A stretch of DNA of 64,000 bases from NCBI RefSeq assembly GCF_006345805.1, contig NC_043018.1, forward strand, positions 10,354,001-10,418,000, written 5' to 3'. A program made the position numbers and the translations under genes. Shown in pieces: positions 20,026 through 43,983 of the stretch. The notes beneath the pieces are model-generated. The model was given only the letters and a program-made list of their open reading frames with translations. It was not told where the DNA came from and searched no databases. The DNA comes from Octopus sinensis (Eukaryota). Position 1 is the first letter of the stretch, and each line of letters starts with the position of its first letter.

Positions 20026-20171
20026 TTAAAGCTTTTTTAAGCAACAGTTTGCACCATTACTACATGGAGGACCCATAAGGGGTATCCAGCCAGCTTTATC
20101 ACAAGTAACTGACAAACATCCAACGATCATACCAACAAGGTTTTTGGTAACGTCTGGACTCAAGCATTCCT
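20026..20171 (-). CDS. Terminal coding exon 4: beta-defensin-like six-Cys domain
   Basis: Acceptor ttctatttctgatttacag|AG (phase 1). Translates (K)ECLSPDVTKNLVGMIVGCLSVTCDKAGWIPLMGPPCSNGANCCLKKL*, with AATAAA 20 nt after the stop. Confidence 0.85.
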
Positions 20172-20302
20172 CTGTAAATCAGAAATAGAATTGGTAATTA
20201 ACAGGTACATATATTAATTAAAAGTAACATTATGTATTTCTATCACTAATTACATACTAATCATAGCAATGACTATAGACAAAAGGCAAAACAAATATAC
20301 TA

Positions 20303-20525
20303 GTGGTGGTGGTGGTGGTGGTGGTGTGGTGGTGGTGGTGGTGGTGGTGGTGGTGGTGGTGGTGGTGGTGGTGGTGGTGGTGGTGGTGGTGGTGGTAGTG
20401 GTGGTAGTGGTGGTGGTGGTGGTGGTGGTGGTGGTGGTGGTGTGGTGGTGGTGGTGGTGGTGGTGGTGGTGGTGGTGGTGGTGGTGGTGGTGGTGGTGGT
20501 AGTGGTGGTGGTGGTGGTGGTGGTG
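20303..20525. repeat. (GGT)n microsatellite in intron 3
   Basis: Direct reading; 1-nt indels break any single reading frame. Confidence 0.95.
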
Positions 20526-20699
20526 AGGGACTTTCTGCTTTACCATGCATTTGTATATTTGAATGCAAGATGGTCAACTGGCTGAGTCATTGGCTGAGTC
20601 ATTAGAGAGTCAGATATATTGTTGCAAATCTCGACTCTCTAAGTTTAAATCCAACTGAGATCAGTATTGCCTTTCATCCTTTTGGGAGTTAATAAAGTA

Positions 20700-20930
20700 C
20701 CAGTCAAGGTGGCAGAATCGTTAGCATGCCGGGCGAAATGCTTAGTGGTATTCCATCTGTCTTTACATTCTGAGTTCAAATTCCACCAAGGTCGACTTTG
20801 CCTTTCATCATTTTGGGGGTCGATAAATTAAGTACCAGTTGTGTACTGGGGGTCGATCTAATCGACTTGGCCCCTCCCCCAAAATTTCTGGCCCTGTGCC
20901 TAGAGTAGAAAAGAATAAAGTACCAGTCAT
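20700..20930 (+). mobile_element. SINE family C (tRNA-like head ggtgagctggcagaatcgttagc..gagttcaaattcc)
   Basis: Other copies: 10955-11170, 11841-12040, 12488-12695, 14845-15490 (several), 16656-16860, 16885-17095, 19240-19390, 21207-23800(-), 57970-58190(-). Confidence 0.88.
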
Positions 20931-21346
20931 GTCCAGGGGTCAATTATTTTCTTCCATTCATTATTGCTTTCTGTCTGGAAGAAATCAGTTATGATCAATT
21001 CTTGAGAGGAATGGGCTCCACCTGGACTAAAAGTCTCCAAGGTACACTATATGCCATGATGGCACTCCGTAACTCCATTAAGGAGTTGAGCAAAGCAAAG
21101 CATATATAAGTCTGTACCTGGACGTGTATGTCTATGCATGTATATACAGTGACATGTATTTATATCGATATGCATACTGACATGGTTCTGTATTCTTTTC
21201 TGCTCCAGGCACAAGGCTCGAAATTTTGGGGGAGTTGGGGCAAGTCAATTAGATCAACCTCAGTATGCAACTGGTACTTAATTTATTGACCCTGAAAGGA
21301 TGAAAGGCAATGTTGACCTTGGCAGTGTTTGAACTCAGAACGTAAA

Positions 21347-39950: not shown

Positions 39951-41639
39951 AGATGTAGGGAAGAGTATCTGACATTAATTAATTAATCACTAACAGCAAG
40001 AACTTAACTGCCAATTCCCAATAGTCTTTAATCCTAAGTGGATGTAGAACTCTAGCTGCATTGGATCTTTTGATTGCGATAAGGAGAAAGATGAACGTAG
40101 CTATATTACCATTTCTTGACCCCCATTGTTATTCTCTTCTGCCCCTCCAAATTATAGCAGGCTTTGTGTATTTTCTCCCTGTGTTCGTTCTGCTACAATA
40201 ATAGCAGTAAGAATTCTTTTATTCTCTAGTTCTGATGAAAAATTTGCTAAAACATTGTAATGGAGTATCCTGTATGTTGAAAACCTATCTTATGCATCTG
40301 AGGAAAATGCATGCATTGATTGATTAAATGGAGTCACTTGAAACGGCCGTAATGCACTAATACCAGGACATACTTTTTACTTATTTTCTTTTTATTCACC
40401 AAAATTCGAGCTGTGAGGACAATACCAGACTGACTTAGTGTCTTAAGTACCTAATTCAACTGAATCTTAATTATTTCTATAAATACATACATATATATAA
40501 AATATATACATACACACGTGTGTGTGTGCATGTATTTGTATTTGTTTTGTGTTTGTGTCTGTCCTTCCTCAACAGCTTGACAACTGGTGTTGGTTTGTTT
40601 ACATCCCCAACTCAACACTTAAGCAAAAGAGATCAATAGAATAGATTTCAGGCTTAAATAAAGAAGTACTGGGATTGATTTGTTCAACTATTTCCTTCCA
40701 GGTGGTGCTCCAGCATGGTCCCACAGTCCAACAACAATCTAAAACTACATTATCCAATATTCACTTTTTCTGTATCCCATGTCTAAGACGACATTGTCTC
40801 ATTTGCGCCCTCTTCTCTTTTGCATTTTTATCAAAGATGTTAGGGTATGATTTTCATAAGAATTTATGAAATAACAGTTTTGGAACTATTTTAAGGAATT
40901 GTTATGAAAGAAATTCTGTTCCCTGAAGCGATGTTTGGAATAAAGCAAGAACTAATTTCTCACAACAGCTGGACATTTTTCCATTCACAGAATCTGTCTC
41001 CTTAATCAGTCAACACTCACAGGCAGGTTTGACCTGGCCGCATCTACTATTCTTTGGCTAATTGTTTTAGAGACCTATATTGTCCTGGATATGACATTAA
41101 AATGTAAAGATCTCCTTCGGTCAAGACTGACCATGGGATTGCACCTAGAAAGTTCCCCTCCAAAGCACAAGTCCTGGCAAGGTTGTGTTACAGAAGACTA
41201 GCAGTCGTCCATGCATACCAGCCTCCTGTCTCCACACCATCGATGTTATCCCAGGGAAAGGCAAAGGGGCCAACACAGCTTGGTACCAGTGATGTCGCAA
41301 CTCATTTCTACAGCTGAGTGACCTGGAGCAATGTGAAATAAAGTGTCCACCAGAATAAAATAGTAATAAAAGGGGCCCATAGATTTTTAAAAATGGTTGA
41401 GAATCATGTTTTACATAGTTCAAACTACACAAGGGAATGCGTGATAAACAAAAGGGGAATTTTGAAAAAGGTTTCTATAAAACTAGTTTCTAAAAACATT
41501 GAATGGCTATGGGGGTGCACCAGACTAAAATGGTAATCAAAAGGGTCTACAGATAAAAAAATGGTTGGAAATCCCTGATTTAGGAGAAAGAAATTCTAGA
41601 ATTCATACCCTCTTCCAACAAACCCTAAGCCAGCAGGGA

Positions 41640-41900
41640 AACGTATGGTTGAGGAAACTAACATGAAGTATGTTCAATAGTATAGATTGAGATCAGAGGC
41701 AAGGGGCGCCTATGAACCCTCAAGGGACAACCAGGAGAGTACATCAGCTGCCCTGGACTGGCATGATAGATGCAAGTTGAGGTTAACTCCATCATCTTCA
41801 GACTGGAATGTGTTCTGAATACACTTGCCAAGGATCAAATACTATGGAGGCAGCCGGTCCATTTTGGCGCACATTCTGCTGCAGTGAGAAATAATGGGAG
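41640..41900 (+). mobile_element. Highly degenerate RTE-like LINE 3' fragment
   Basis: LAKDQILWRQ resembles the RTE terminal LAQDRxxWR motif. Confidence 0.35.
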
Positions 41901-42998
41901 TGAATGCTGTCATGAGTAGACATAGACCCTATGGATACCCTGTTGGCTCTCCCACTAGTTGAGTCAATGGAGCATCGAGGATGAATGAGAGAGCTGCATT
42001 GGCACTAGGTTGATATGCAATAACAACTGAAATGAAGTACCTACTGAAGAACAAGAACACAACAAACTGCTCAGTCCAGGAATTGAACCCATGACCTTAC
42101 AATTATCAGCCCAATGTCTTAACCATTAAGCCAAGTACCTGTCTCATAGAAAACAAAAATATGCAGTAGCAACAAATTCTTTTAAATTCTACATTACTTC
42201 AAGTGGAATTTTTGTTAGATTTTGTTGATGTTCATTAATTTAAGAGAGTCCAACCAAGGAATTTAGTACATCAGGTTCAAATTCCTTATTAGCACCTTAA
42301 TTATAAATTGTAAATTTGTGTTAGAAGTTTCCAATCAACATAGAATCCTCCTACAGTAAAATCTAGTGAAATGTAATAAGATCCAGCTTTCCTAGTTTTC
42401 CCACAAAATCCCCAAGTTTTCCCACAATAGGATCAGCTCTATTCTCCCCTTAAAAAGATCCACTTACCCCAGTCTTTCTACCAAATATTCACCCGCCTTT
42501 GTCTTCCTACAAAAGATCCATTTGTTCTAGTCTTTCCTCCAAAGATCATTCTGCTCAAGTCTTCCTCACAATATCCACTGCCCTCTTCTTCCCACAAAAG
42601 ATCCATCTACCCAGATTTTCCTCCCACAAAATATCTGACGGTTCTAGTTTTCACACAAAAGTTTCATCTGCTCTGACCTTCCCATCAAAAAAAAATTTCT
42701 GCTTTAGTCTTCCCACAAAAGATGCAGGTATTCTGACCTTCCCACTAAATATTAGCAACATGACAATTTCAAACCAAATATTACAATACTGGCCATATTT
42801 ATTATTTTATAGGCGTAGGAGTGGTTGTGTGGAAAGTAGCTTGCTTATCGACCACATGGTTCTGGGTTCATTCCCACTGCATGGCACCTTGGGCAAATGT
42901 CTTCTACTATAGCCTCAGGCCGACCAAAGCCTTGTGAGTGCATTTGGTAGACAGAAACTGAAAGAAGCCTGTGTATGTATATATATTTATATATATAT

Positions 42999-43057
<59 letters not shown>

Positions 43058-43910
43058 ATATGTTGTGTGTCCGTGTCTGTCCCCACAACATTGCTTGACA
43101 ACTGATGGTGTTGTGTTTACACCTCCTTAACTTAGCGGTTTGGCAAAAGAGACCGATAGAATAAGTACTAGTCCCGGGGTCGATTTGCTCAACTGAAGGC
43201 GGTGTTCCAGCATGGCCGCAGTCAAATGACTGAAACAAGTAGAGAGTAAAAGAATAAGTACAAAATTTGCCATGACACTAAAATCTGGGTCTTGGCTTTC
43301 AGTTGTGCTAGGGTCTAGGGGAAGGGAAAGGGACATTGCAGGGGAGAAGTCTTAACAACTGTTTCAATTAGATTGGAGGAAGTTGTAGTAGATAAGAAGG
43401 GGGGGTCCTTGTAGAAGAAGGGGGAAGTAACAAATGGGAAAAGGGGGGAGGTACTTGTAGAGGAGGGAGATGAAATGGCATCACAAATGTAATTTTCTGA
43501 CGGTTTACCCTTGCAATGTTGACTGAAGGATCCTCAAAAATAGCAGCCAAATCTCCTTTAAACCATCTTATGTCATCTTAATACAAGAAAGAACATATGG
43601 AATAAATGCAATCCTAGTAAACCCCTAAAAAGGAGAGTTTTAGTTTTGATGCTTTTGATCGTGTGTCTGATTTGTCATAGCTGACCTAGGGTTAAAGAAC
43701 AATACTAACAACTGAGGGAGCTTCTATGTGGTCATTCAACCAGCTAGAAATAGCAGCCAAATCTCCTTCAAATTACTCCTTACCATACTGAATCAACAAC
43801 AGCAACAATAACAGCCAGCAGTTTGAAAACAATTTACAACATAATTACATAAATAAAATATGGAAAAAAAAACCCAATCAATCAATAAAGATCAATAAAA
43901 TAATTCTTAC

Positions 43911-43983
43911 AACTTTGACATTTGACCAAAGACAGGAACTGTAGAACAGCCACTAAGAGTAAGAGTGTTCGATTCTTAACCAT
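43911..43983 (-). CDS. Coding exon 1 of secreted cysteine-rich mucin/defensin-like gene (signal peptide)
   Basis: accATGG Kozak context. Translates MVKNRTLLLLVAVLQFLSLVKCQS+T (basic N-terminus, hydrophobic core, V-x-C cleavage site), followed by the phase-1 donor T|gtaaga. Confidence 0.8.

Follow-up and report, generated by a model that had tools for sequence, protein, structure and literature searches.

The closest described relative of the gene reported here is its annotated neighbour in Octopus sinensis, LOC115223160, which encodes a 103-aa protein (XP_029649447.1, P0038 in our searches; "uncharacterized protein LOC115223160 [Octopus sinensis]") composed of a signal peptide, one six-cysteine module, and a six-cysteine "GWIPL…CC" tip. 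Clustered with this protein are CAI9739107.1 and CAI9739106.1 of O. vulgaris and XP_014775150.1 of O. bimaculoides. Here, we describe a second, predicted gene, hereafter the focal gene, which comprises four exons on the minus strand of a 64,000-nt stretch of O. sinensis DNA. This stretch, referred to as the window, is most likely CM016880.1:10,354,001-10,418,000, with the focal gene most likely at CM016880.1:10,374,026-10,397,983; all coordinates below are window positions unless stated otherwise. We consider it probable (roughly 0.7) that the focal locus is a genuine, unannotated protein-coding gene, an ancient paralogue of LOC115223160 whose product is a secreted modular protein.

More distant points of comparison are provided by small mucin-like or glue proteins (Drosophila Sgs, "New glue" type), which have a signal peptide and Cys-rich ends around a central Pro/Thr repeat, and by peptides of the beta-defensin (trans-defensin) fold, such as the C-domain of big defensins, vertebrate beta-defensins, panusins, and helianthamide or magnificamide. 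The cysteines of beta-defensins are spaced at about C-x4-8-C-x3-5-C-x9-13-C-x4-7-CC and form the disulfides C1-C5, C2-C4, and C3-C6. In big and beta-defensin genes, a phase-1 intron lies immediately 5' of the exon that encodes the Cys domain; in big defensins, a hydrophobic N-terminal domain devoid of Cys is connected to a cationic C-domain by a linker that carries a dibasic site, and unannotated big defensins have been reported from Octopus genomes (PMC7203481). The fold of helianthamide, an alpha-amylase inhibitor of sea anemones, is beta-defensin-like (PMC6835510).

The four exons of the focal gene (73 + 117 + 243 + 146 = 579 nt; Table 1) were extracted, joined, and translated into a 192-aa product. 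Its precursor contains a cleavable signal peptide, two tandem six-Cys modules of ~39 residues, a 44-residue stalk (residues 102-145), and a six-Cys C-terminal domain of 48 residues, here called the tip. There are 19 cysteines in the precursor and 18 in the mature chain of 170 aa, where they form three blocks of six; the mature product has an isoelectric point (pI) of 7.5, and the tip carries a net charge of +2. An earlier note on this stretch had predicted this arrangement, with GT-AG sites, phase-1 junctions throughout, 18 mature cysteines, and a (VPTT)5 stalk, and re-extraction reproduced it exactly. The composition of the exon 1 product likewise supports the signal peptide and the secretion that the note had claimed, and the program-made list of open reading frames (ORFs) does contain, as stated there, exon 3 only (ORF 24811-25320).

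The donor of intron 1 reads GTAAGA and those of introns 2 and 3 read GTAAGT; each acceptor ends in AAG or CAG after a long pyrimidine tract, and all three junctions are in phase 1. Exon 1 terminates in the T of a split Cys codon, and introns split the first Cys codon of both N-terminal modules (T/GT and T/GC), so that module borders are exon borders. The order of the exons is constrained as well, because only the join of exon 3 to exon 4 avoids a stop codon: with a T at the end of exons 1 and 2 and an AG at the start of exon 4, joining either of the two to exon 4 creates TAG, whereas the 3-to-4 join reads through (A/AG, Lys). A scan of the 36 kb upstream of exon 2 for signal-peptide exons, defined by an ATG, a hydrophobic core, and a GTRAG donor in phase 1, placed exon 1 at the top, as the sole non-microsatellite candidate; the hydrophobic core of exon 1 scored 2.85, and its start context (AACCATGG) is an optimal Kozak site. 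Criteria of splicing and open frame are weak by themselves, since the minus strand of the window holds 32 open YAG...GTAAG[TA] segments of 90-300 nt. The modules of exons 2 and 3 are homologous to each other (tblastn, E = 5e-5), and no further module-like, tip-like, or Cys-rich exon was found anywhere in the window.

The gene model is carried above all by its kinship with LOC115223160. BLASTP aligned the focal product with XP_029649447.1 over the signal peptide plus module (E = 5e-9) and over the tip (E = 3e-4). Exon 4 is 49% identical to the tip exon of the paralogue, and the tip alignments (A3 and A5) contain 17-18 invariant columns, which include all six cysteines. Intron positions and phases are identical in the two genes, down to the splitting of the first Cys codon; in both, the module exon runs on for five codons and one base past its last Cys (CIEPKM vs CIEPII), and both tip exons begin in phase 1. 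Exons 2 and 3 each show the family module, C-x2-C-x6-C-x5/6-C-x5/8-C-x7-C on a single phase 1-1 exon with split T/GY, and exon 4 is a phase-1 exon with the family tip pattern P-D-V...C-L...C-D-x-G-W-I-P-L...C...CC-x-K. The similarity extends to the 3' end, where the 20 nt that contain the focal poly(A) signal (AAATAGAAAATAAAGTAAAG) match the last exon of the paralogue and its poly(A) region at 90% identity (E = 8e-5). Intron positions shared with an independently annotated gene that is conserved in three species strongly corroborate the focal exon model, and on these sequence comparisons we regard it as very probably right.

A two-tip profile, run with HMMER exhaustively against 1.84 billion representative proteins, had one genuine match, XP_029649447.1 (E = 1.2e-13); since one row of the profile is the tip exon of that very protein, the match speaks for its uniqueness in the library and not for independent similarity. 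The second match, a 534-aa repeat protein (P0039), was spurious, aligning to only 18 profile columns. All database matches of the family come from Octopus species, in line with the lineage-specific origin suggested in the earlier note.

The two genes parted long ago. When the focal gene is compared with its paralogue, synonymous sites differ at a proportion (pS) of 0.69-1.0, which is saturated, and non-synonymous sites at one (pN) of 0.38-0.54; a ratio of substitution rates (dN/dS) is unusable for a pair with saturated synonymous sites, and only the comparison pN < pS serves. Between species, by contrast, the pS of LOC115223160 is 0.07-0.09, with a synonymous rate (dS) of about 0.08-0.10 for O. 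sinensis and O. bimaculoides. These values place the duplication far before the species split. Had the focal copy been dead for a large part of the time since then, stops, frameshifts, or lost cysteines would be expected in it, and it has none: its frame of 192 codons, 18 of 18 cysteines, six splice sites, TATA box, Kozak site, and AATAAA signal are all intact.

With LOC115223160 and its orthologues, the focal protein shares the signal peptide, a six-Cys module ending in C(I/V)E(P/R), and the tip CD.GWIPL...CC.K. It differs from them in having a second module and a 44-residue Pro/Thr stalk, both encoded by exon 3, a 7-residue hydrophobic insertion in the tip (KNLVGMIVG), a stop codon contained in the tip exon instead of being divided between that exon and the next, and a near-neutral instead of an acidic charge; identity is only about 33-49%, and the focal gene is unannotated. 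The two-module, mucin-stalked focal protein is an architectural variant of an uncharacterised, apparently Octopus-restricted family. The earlier note had described the six-Cys modules as novel and the architecture as unrecognised, and indeed the modules are related to each other and neither they nor the whole product match any Pfam or PDB sequence. The module and tip types, however, were already in databases through LOC115223160 and its orthologues; LOC115223160 is a neighbour that the note had overlooked and whose family the architecture extends.

Across the orthologues of LOC115223160, 12 of 12 cysteines are invariant, the signal peptide differs at one residue, and replacements cluster in the module. 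The pN/pS ratio is 1.1 between O. sinensis and O. vulgaris (4 non-synonymous and 1 synonymous difference), 0.85 between O. sinensis and O. bimaculoides (15/5), and 0.57 between O. vulgaris and O. bimaculoides (12/6), all of them ratios of small counts. Antimicrobial peptides, toxins, reproductive proteins, and other secreted effectors commonly combine a fixed scaffold and signal with a fast-changing surface.

Within the stalk, an in-frame tandem repeat of 12 nt x 5.7 (24846-24913) encodes (VPTT)5, and its copies are 96% identical in DNA. Such a Pro/Thr-rich tandem repeat is what defines mucin-like (proline-threonine-serine, PTS) domains, which bears out the mucin-type stalk of the earlier note; by likeness to these domains, the stalk should be densely O-glycosylated and extended. 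Pfam matches to the VWD, C8, TIL, and CK domains of gel-forming mucins were absent from the focal product.

We propose that the focal protein would enter the endoplasmic reticulum and form nine disulfides, three per module, and that O-glycosylation in the Golgi would turn the stalk into a stiff, hydrated rod. It would be secreted as a bipartite molecule of ~18 kDa (before glycans), with a compact tip, probably of beta-defensin fold, held away from the N-terminal modules. Most likely, it would act extracellularly, as a binding or defence component of mucus or of a gland secretion, and its scaffold cysteines would stay fixed while surface residues evolve fast, as in LOC115223160. As to function, our tentative choice, at somewhat less than even odds, is an extracellular binding or defence protein that is secreted and O-glycosylated, has nine disulfides, and carries a tip probably of beta-defensin-type fold. 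The gene probably originated by phase-1 exon duplication and shuffling, in which the module exon was doubled and the stalk gained, and the last intron would have been either lost in the focal gene or gained in LOC115223160.

Several observations weigh against this reading of the gene and its function. Exact look-up in a collection of 15 billion proteins gave 0 matches for the 192-aa product, for the ORF of exon 3, and for five alternative isoforms, and no annotated orthologue of the focal gene was found in any species when the tip profile was run against the 1.84 billion representatives. Its absence from the collection means that the focal gene is unannotated in the three octopus proteomes included there, and three independent octopus annotations called LOC115223160 but not the focal gene. 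The 16.4-kb intron 1 leaves room for a different or additional 5' exon. That purifying selection acts on the focal copy itself is something we infer, since the orthologous loci stop short of exon 4: the locus from O. bimaculoides (L002) reaches the window equivalent of ~16.9 kb and that from O. vulgaris (L003) ~12.8 kb, ~3 and ~7 kb short of it. The syntenic stretches would follow directly after CM046622.1:31,133,470 in O. bimaculoides and OX597835.1:42,876,968 in O. vulgaris. On the side of function, hmmscan assigned a Pfam family neither to the whole product nor to its parts or the paralogue; the PDB, searched by sequence and by profile, yielded no match save a Zn2Cys6-like spacing, and the near-neutral net charge of the focal product (pI 7.5; paralogue, 4.45) is unlike that of cationic antimicrobial defensins. 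The checks against protein databases, Pfam, AlphaFold, and Foldseek suggested in the earlier note thus brought out the Octopus paralogue, but no Pfam family and no significant fold match for the tip or paralogue models.

The alternative that survives best concerns the role of the protein. It holds that the product is a structural or adhesive component of a secretion (a small mucin or glue, an egg coat, or a sucker protein), or a binder or inhibitor of the salivary or venom gland, and not an immune effector. Cys-rich ends around a Pro/Thr repeat do resemble small glue and mucin proteins, with which the focal product shares its signal peptide, Cys-rich termini, and a tandem repeat presumed to be O-glycosylated; its sole Pfam trace is New_glue (E = 0.85). 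The nearest fold match, helianthamide, is an enzyme inhibitor of sea-anemone secretions and not an antimicrobial (PMC6835510), and the high pN/pS of the paralogue would also suit venom or reproductive proteins. Set against this, the Cys domains are unrelated to those of glue proteins, the repeat is much shorter than theirs, the New_glue match is sub-threshold and compositional only, the gel-forming mucin domains are missing, and the stalk is short at 44 residues. As a specific proposal, we consider it possible though on the unlikely side, and we place a role as a structural or adhesive component, or as an inhibitor or toxin of a gland, on an equal footing with an immune one.

Less likely is that the focal protein is a classical membrane-active antimicrobial beta-defensin or a relative of the big defensins. 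The loops of the paralogue tip (8, 3, 12, and 4 residues) fall within the beta-defensin spacing given above, and so do those of the focal tip, except for its first loop, which at 15 residues exceeds the usual range. A phase-1 intron stands directly 5' of the Cys-domain exon in both the focal gene (exon 4) and the paralogue, as it does in big and beta-defensin genes. Phase 1 is, however, the commonest phase of exons that encode secreted modules, so this match is weak evidence for a defensin. AlphaFold2 models assigned the focal tip a predicted local distance difference test score (pLDDT) of 74, with strands at 8-10, 14-19, and 41-46, and the tip of the paralogue a pLDDT of about 70, with strands at 74-77, 84-92, and 95-100. 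A C-terminal beta hairpin bearing C4 and the CC pair is predicted in both tips; the module region of the paralogue model (pLDDT 42-47) is unusable for fold. When the models were compared with the PDB using Foldseek, helianthamide (4x0n_B) was the top match of the focal tip (E = 2.1; template modelling score, TM, 0.45-0.47) and the sixth of the paralogue model (E = 6.9, TMt 0.56), both non-significant. The big defensins reported from Octopus genomes (PMC7203481) would fit a defensin as well.

Other evidence argues against such a peptide. Neither the whole protein, the tip alone, nor the paralogue matched Defensin_beta, Defensin_beta_2, or Defensin_big even at E <= 10. The N-terminal part consists of Cys-rich modules in place of the hydrophobic domain of big defensins, no RR or KR linker that could serve as a dibasic processing site is present, and the tip charge is only +2 while the mature chain of the paralogue is acidic. 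The focal tip thus resembles trans-defensin peptides in its six cysteines with a terminal CC doublet, its single exon after a phase-1 intron, and its predicted beta hairpin; it departs from them in the lack of sequence or hidden Markov model (HMM) similarity, its non-cationic character, and its long first loop, and it is fused behind Cys modules and a mucin-like stalk, unlike free trans-defensin peptides or big defensins. Of the defensin-like tip claimed in the earlier note, the Cys spacing, phase-1 exon, predicted strands, and non-significant helianthamide match stand, and they are offset by the missing HMM match and the near-neutral to acidic charge. Taken together with the models, they weakly suggest that "defensin-like" is a reasonable structural lead for the tip, with membership not established.

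A more daring form of this idea, which we find quite improbable, is that the focal tip is a true trans-defensin exon from a molluscan big-defensin gene, shuffled by way of its phase-1 intron behind a six-Cys module and a mucin stalk to give a "stalked defensin" in mucus. If true, it would illustrate, in a living non-vertebrate, the exon-shuffling route by which beta-defensins have been proposed to originate.

With regard to the status of the gene, the main rival to a functional paralogue is a very recently silenced duplicate. Under this explanation, which we judge improbable, the focal gene is a young pseudogene, recently silenced or never expressed, that is intact only for want of time to decay. 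It would account for a gene that is unannotated in the O. sinensis RefSeq set next to an annotated paralogue, for the lack of an orthologous protein in any annotated proteome, for introns heavily invaded by repeats, and for the 96%-identical (VPTT)n repeat, which could be neutral slippage. The duplication is ancient, however, so that silencing would have to be very recent, and not one of the 192 codons, 18 cysteines, six splice sites, or promoter, start, and poly(A) signals is broken. Nor is the missing record of expression informative: the LOC115223160 cluster is made up of NCBI, UniRef, EukProt, and MetaClust entries only, with 0 members from transcript assemblies (Logan), and the absence of the focal gene there therefore says nothing on its expression.

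Alternatively, the gene may be real and its model incomplete or partly wrong, with another 5' exon, extra exons in intron 1, or a main isoform that skips exon 2 and retains the signal peptide, module 2, the stalk, and the tip. Intron 1 is three times as long as that of the paralogue (5.2 kb), the join of exon 1 to exon 3 is in frame and rebuilds a Cys codon (TGC), and an alternative 3' isoform of the paralogue is on record in O. vulgaris (P0040). On the other hand, the scan upstream of exon 2 gave no other candidate for a signal-peptide exon, the window holds no more exons of the family type, and exon 1 has its own TATA box and Kozak site and shares its split-Cys phase with exon 1 of the paralogue. 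The earlier note had allowed for extra exons within intron 1; we found none that is family-like, and it is the length of the intron that keeps this caveat alive. We rate an incomplete or faulty model as rather improbable.

Finally, coincidence could in principle have supplied four open frames bordered by splice-like motifs, as the 32 exon-sized segments on the minus strand might suggest, but this reading is effectively refuted by the HMMER match to XP_029649447.1, the BLASTP homology to that independently annotated, conserved protein, the shared gene plan with its identical intron positions and phases, the homology between exons 2 and 3, and a probability of ~2e-5 for a chance open frame of 192 codons at the stop-codon frequency of the window.

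If transcribed, the focal gene would be missing from the annotation of Octopus sinensis and probably also from those of O. vulgaris and O. bimaculoides. A single "uncharacterized protein" would then become a small, octopus-restricted modular family built by phase-1 exon duplication, in which a signal peptide is followed by one six-Cys module or two, in some cases a mucin stalk, and finally a knot ending in CC. A fixed signal and Cys scaffold with fast surfaces is the usual home of lineage-specific molecules of defence, venom, adhesion, and reproduction, and the secretions of cephalopods are poorly catalogued. Should the tip truly have a beta-defensin fold, it would bear on the evolutionary redeployment of trans-defensin exons. 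More generally, short multi-exon genes for secreted proteins with long, repeat-filled introns may escape present cephalopod annotation, and paralogy together with conserved intron phase could serve to recover them.

Table 1. Features of the focal gene and of the part of LOC115223160 that lies in the window.
Feature	Position	Strand	Details
TATA box TATATAAG	44061..44068	-	~80 nt 5' of focal ATG; read from the sequence
Focal exon 1, coding part, 73 nt	43911..43983	-	Kozak site AACCATGG; predicted signal peptide MVKNRTLLLLVAVLQFLSLVKC/QS; donor GTAAGA
Focal intron 1, 16,368 nt	27543..43910	-	Microsatellites, SINE-like repeats, 487-aa N-rich ORF
Focal exon 2, 117 nt, phase 1-1	27426..27542	-	Module 1, C-x2-C-x6-C-x6-C-x7-C-x7-C; ends ...CIEPKM
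Focal intron 2, 2,368 nt	25058..27425	-	Holds mariner Transposase_1 remnant
Focal exon 3, first part, module 2	24945..25057	-	C-x2-C-x6-C-x6-C-x8-C-x7-C
Focal exon 3, second part, Pro/Thr-rich stalk	24815..24944	-	44 residues, 19 Thr, 12 Pro
Focal intron 3, 4,643 nt	20172..24814	-	184-bp x13.5 tandem array and GTG microsatellite
Focal exon 4, six-Cys tip	20026..20171	-	C-x15-C-x4-C-x12-C-x5-CC; motif CD.AGWIPL; TAA stop at 20026-20028
Focal poly(A) signal AATAAA	20001..20006	-	20 nt 3' of stop, inside AAATAGAAAATAAAGTAAAG
Paralogue module exon, 3' end	1..55	+	...NHALCFTDGTLYCIEPII; donor GTAAGT at position 56; full exon L001 15303-15410, 108 nt, phase 1-1
Paralogue tip exon, 117 nt, phase 1-1	2956..3072	+	D-VCAVPDVETACLPSCDSGWIPLFNTTCKAGVCCVKVPS; C-x8-C-x3-C-x12-C-x4-CC
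Paralogue terminal exon, start	4493..4511	+	AA of split stop T/AA, then ATAGAAAATAC; AATAAA 4506-4511; coding range ends at 4494

LOC115223160 lies at the left edge of the window, tail-to-tail (convergent) with the focal gene and 15.5 kb from it. A tblastn search of the focal parts against the window revealed a diverged tip copy on the plus strand, with AG and GTAAGT borders in phase 1-1. The locus that encodes XP_029649447.1 (L001) is 100% identical to window positions 1-14494, and LOC115223160 occupies L001 10001-19849. Rebuilt from L001, its exons measure 85, 108, and 117 nt, the first of them closing on the T of the split Cys codon before a GTAAGA donor, and are followed by a last exon that starts with the AA of the split T/AA stop and continues with ATAGAAAATACAATAAAG. 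A TATAAAA element stands at a distance from the ATG similar to that of the focal TATA box. In O. vulgaris, an alternative 113-aa form (CAI9739106.1, P0040) uses a GT within the tip exon and a far-downstream exon (L003 24649-24705), and since the CC pair is destroyed, it is probably an aberrant or minor isoform.

Several database matches were set aside. Homology searches with the whole protein matched Pro/Thr-rich linkers only and were rejected as compositional, and the sub-threshold Pfam matches, namely New_glue (driven by the repeat), EGF_alliinase, and SEHBP, were taken as noise. The tip and the modules returned nothing when used in word-indexed searches, a weak negative given that the index also missed XP_029649447.1 despite a query containing 39 exact residues of it. 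Over its first half, C-x2-C-x6-C-x5/6-C including a conserved Pro, the module copies the spacing of fungal Zn2Cys6 proteins (LAC9, E = 0.11), which we regard as coincidence in a secreted protein. The Zn2Cys6 binuclear cluster follows the pattern C-x2-C-x6-C-x5-12-C-x2-C-x6-8-C and belongs to nuclear DNA-binding proteins; the second half of the focal module lacks C-x2-C and the product has a signal peptide, which is not the GAL4 type. This likeness could nevertheless seed false annotations. A literature search by locus and accession identifiers and by keywords returned no paper naming the family.

The earlier note had described the introns as filled with transposable elements. They do hold ~400-bp copies resembling short interspersed nuclear elements (SINEs) and one mariner remnant, but consist mostly of micro- and minisatellites, with a tandem array in addition. 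The remnant (Transposase_1 type, 26033-26395, minus strand) lies in intron 2 and, at E = 1.7e-4, falls just below the Pfam cutoff. The array, in intron 3 (21269-23750), repeats a 184-bp unit 13.5 times at 99-100% identity, and the unit carries a tRNA-arm-like GGCGGGATTTGAACTCAGAAT stretch; Rfam and tRNA (ARAGORN) scans of the window, this array included, returned nothing. It is probably a very recently amplified, SINE-derived satellite.

Some further features were seen in and around the gene. An AT-rich 41-bp unit is repeated 11 times (97% identity) at 19500-19950, from ~50 nt past the focal poly(A) signal. The AT-rich intron 1 contains an Asn-rich open frame of 487 codons (36078-37541) on the same strand as the focal gene; it has no Pfam match, its C-terminal part (…VYIGATMNSIKQRWNYHRYTF…) is GIY-YIG-like by eye, and it may be a degenerate ORF of a mobile element. 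The ~400-bp repeat has an internal microsatellite and occurs at 39519-39933, 46650-47052, 52215-52616, 54412-54836, 814-989, 42806-42972, and 27018-27184; these copies are 80-93% identical and lie on both strands, more are present in L001 and in L002, the latter from O. bimaculoides, and the repeat looks like an abundant octopus SINE-like element.

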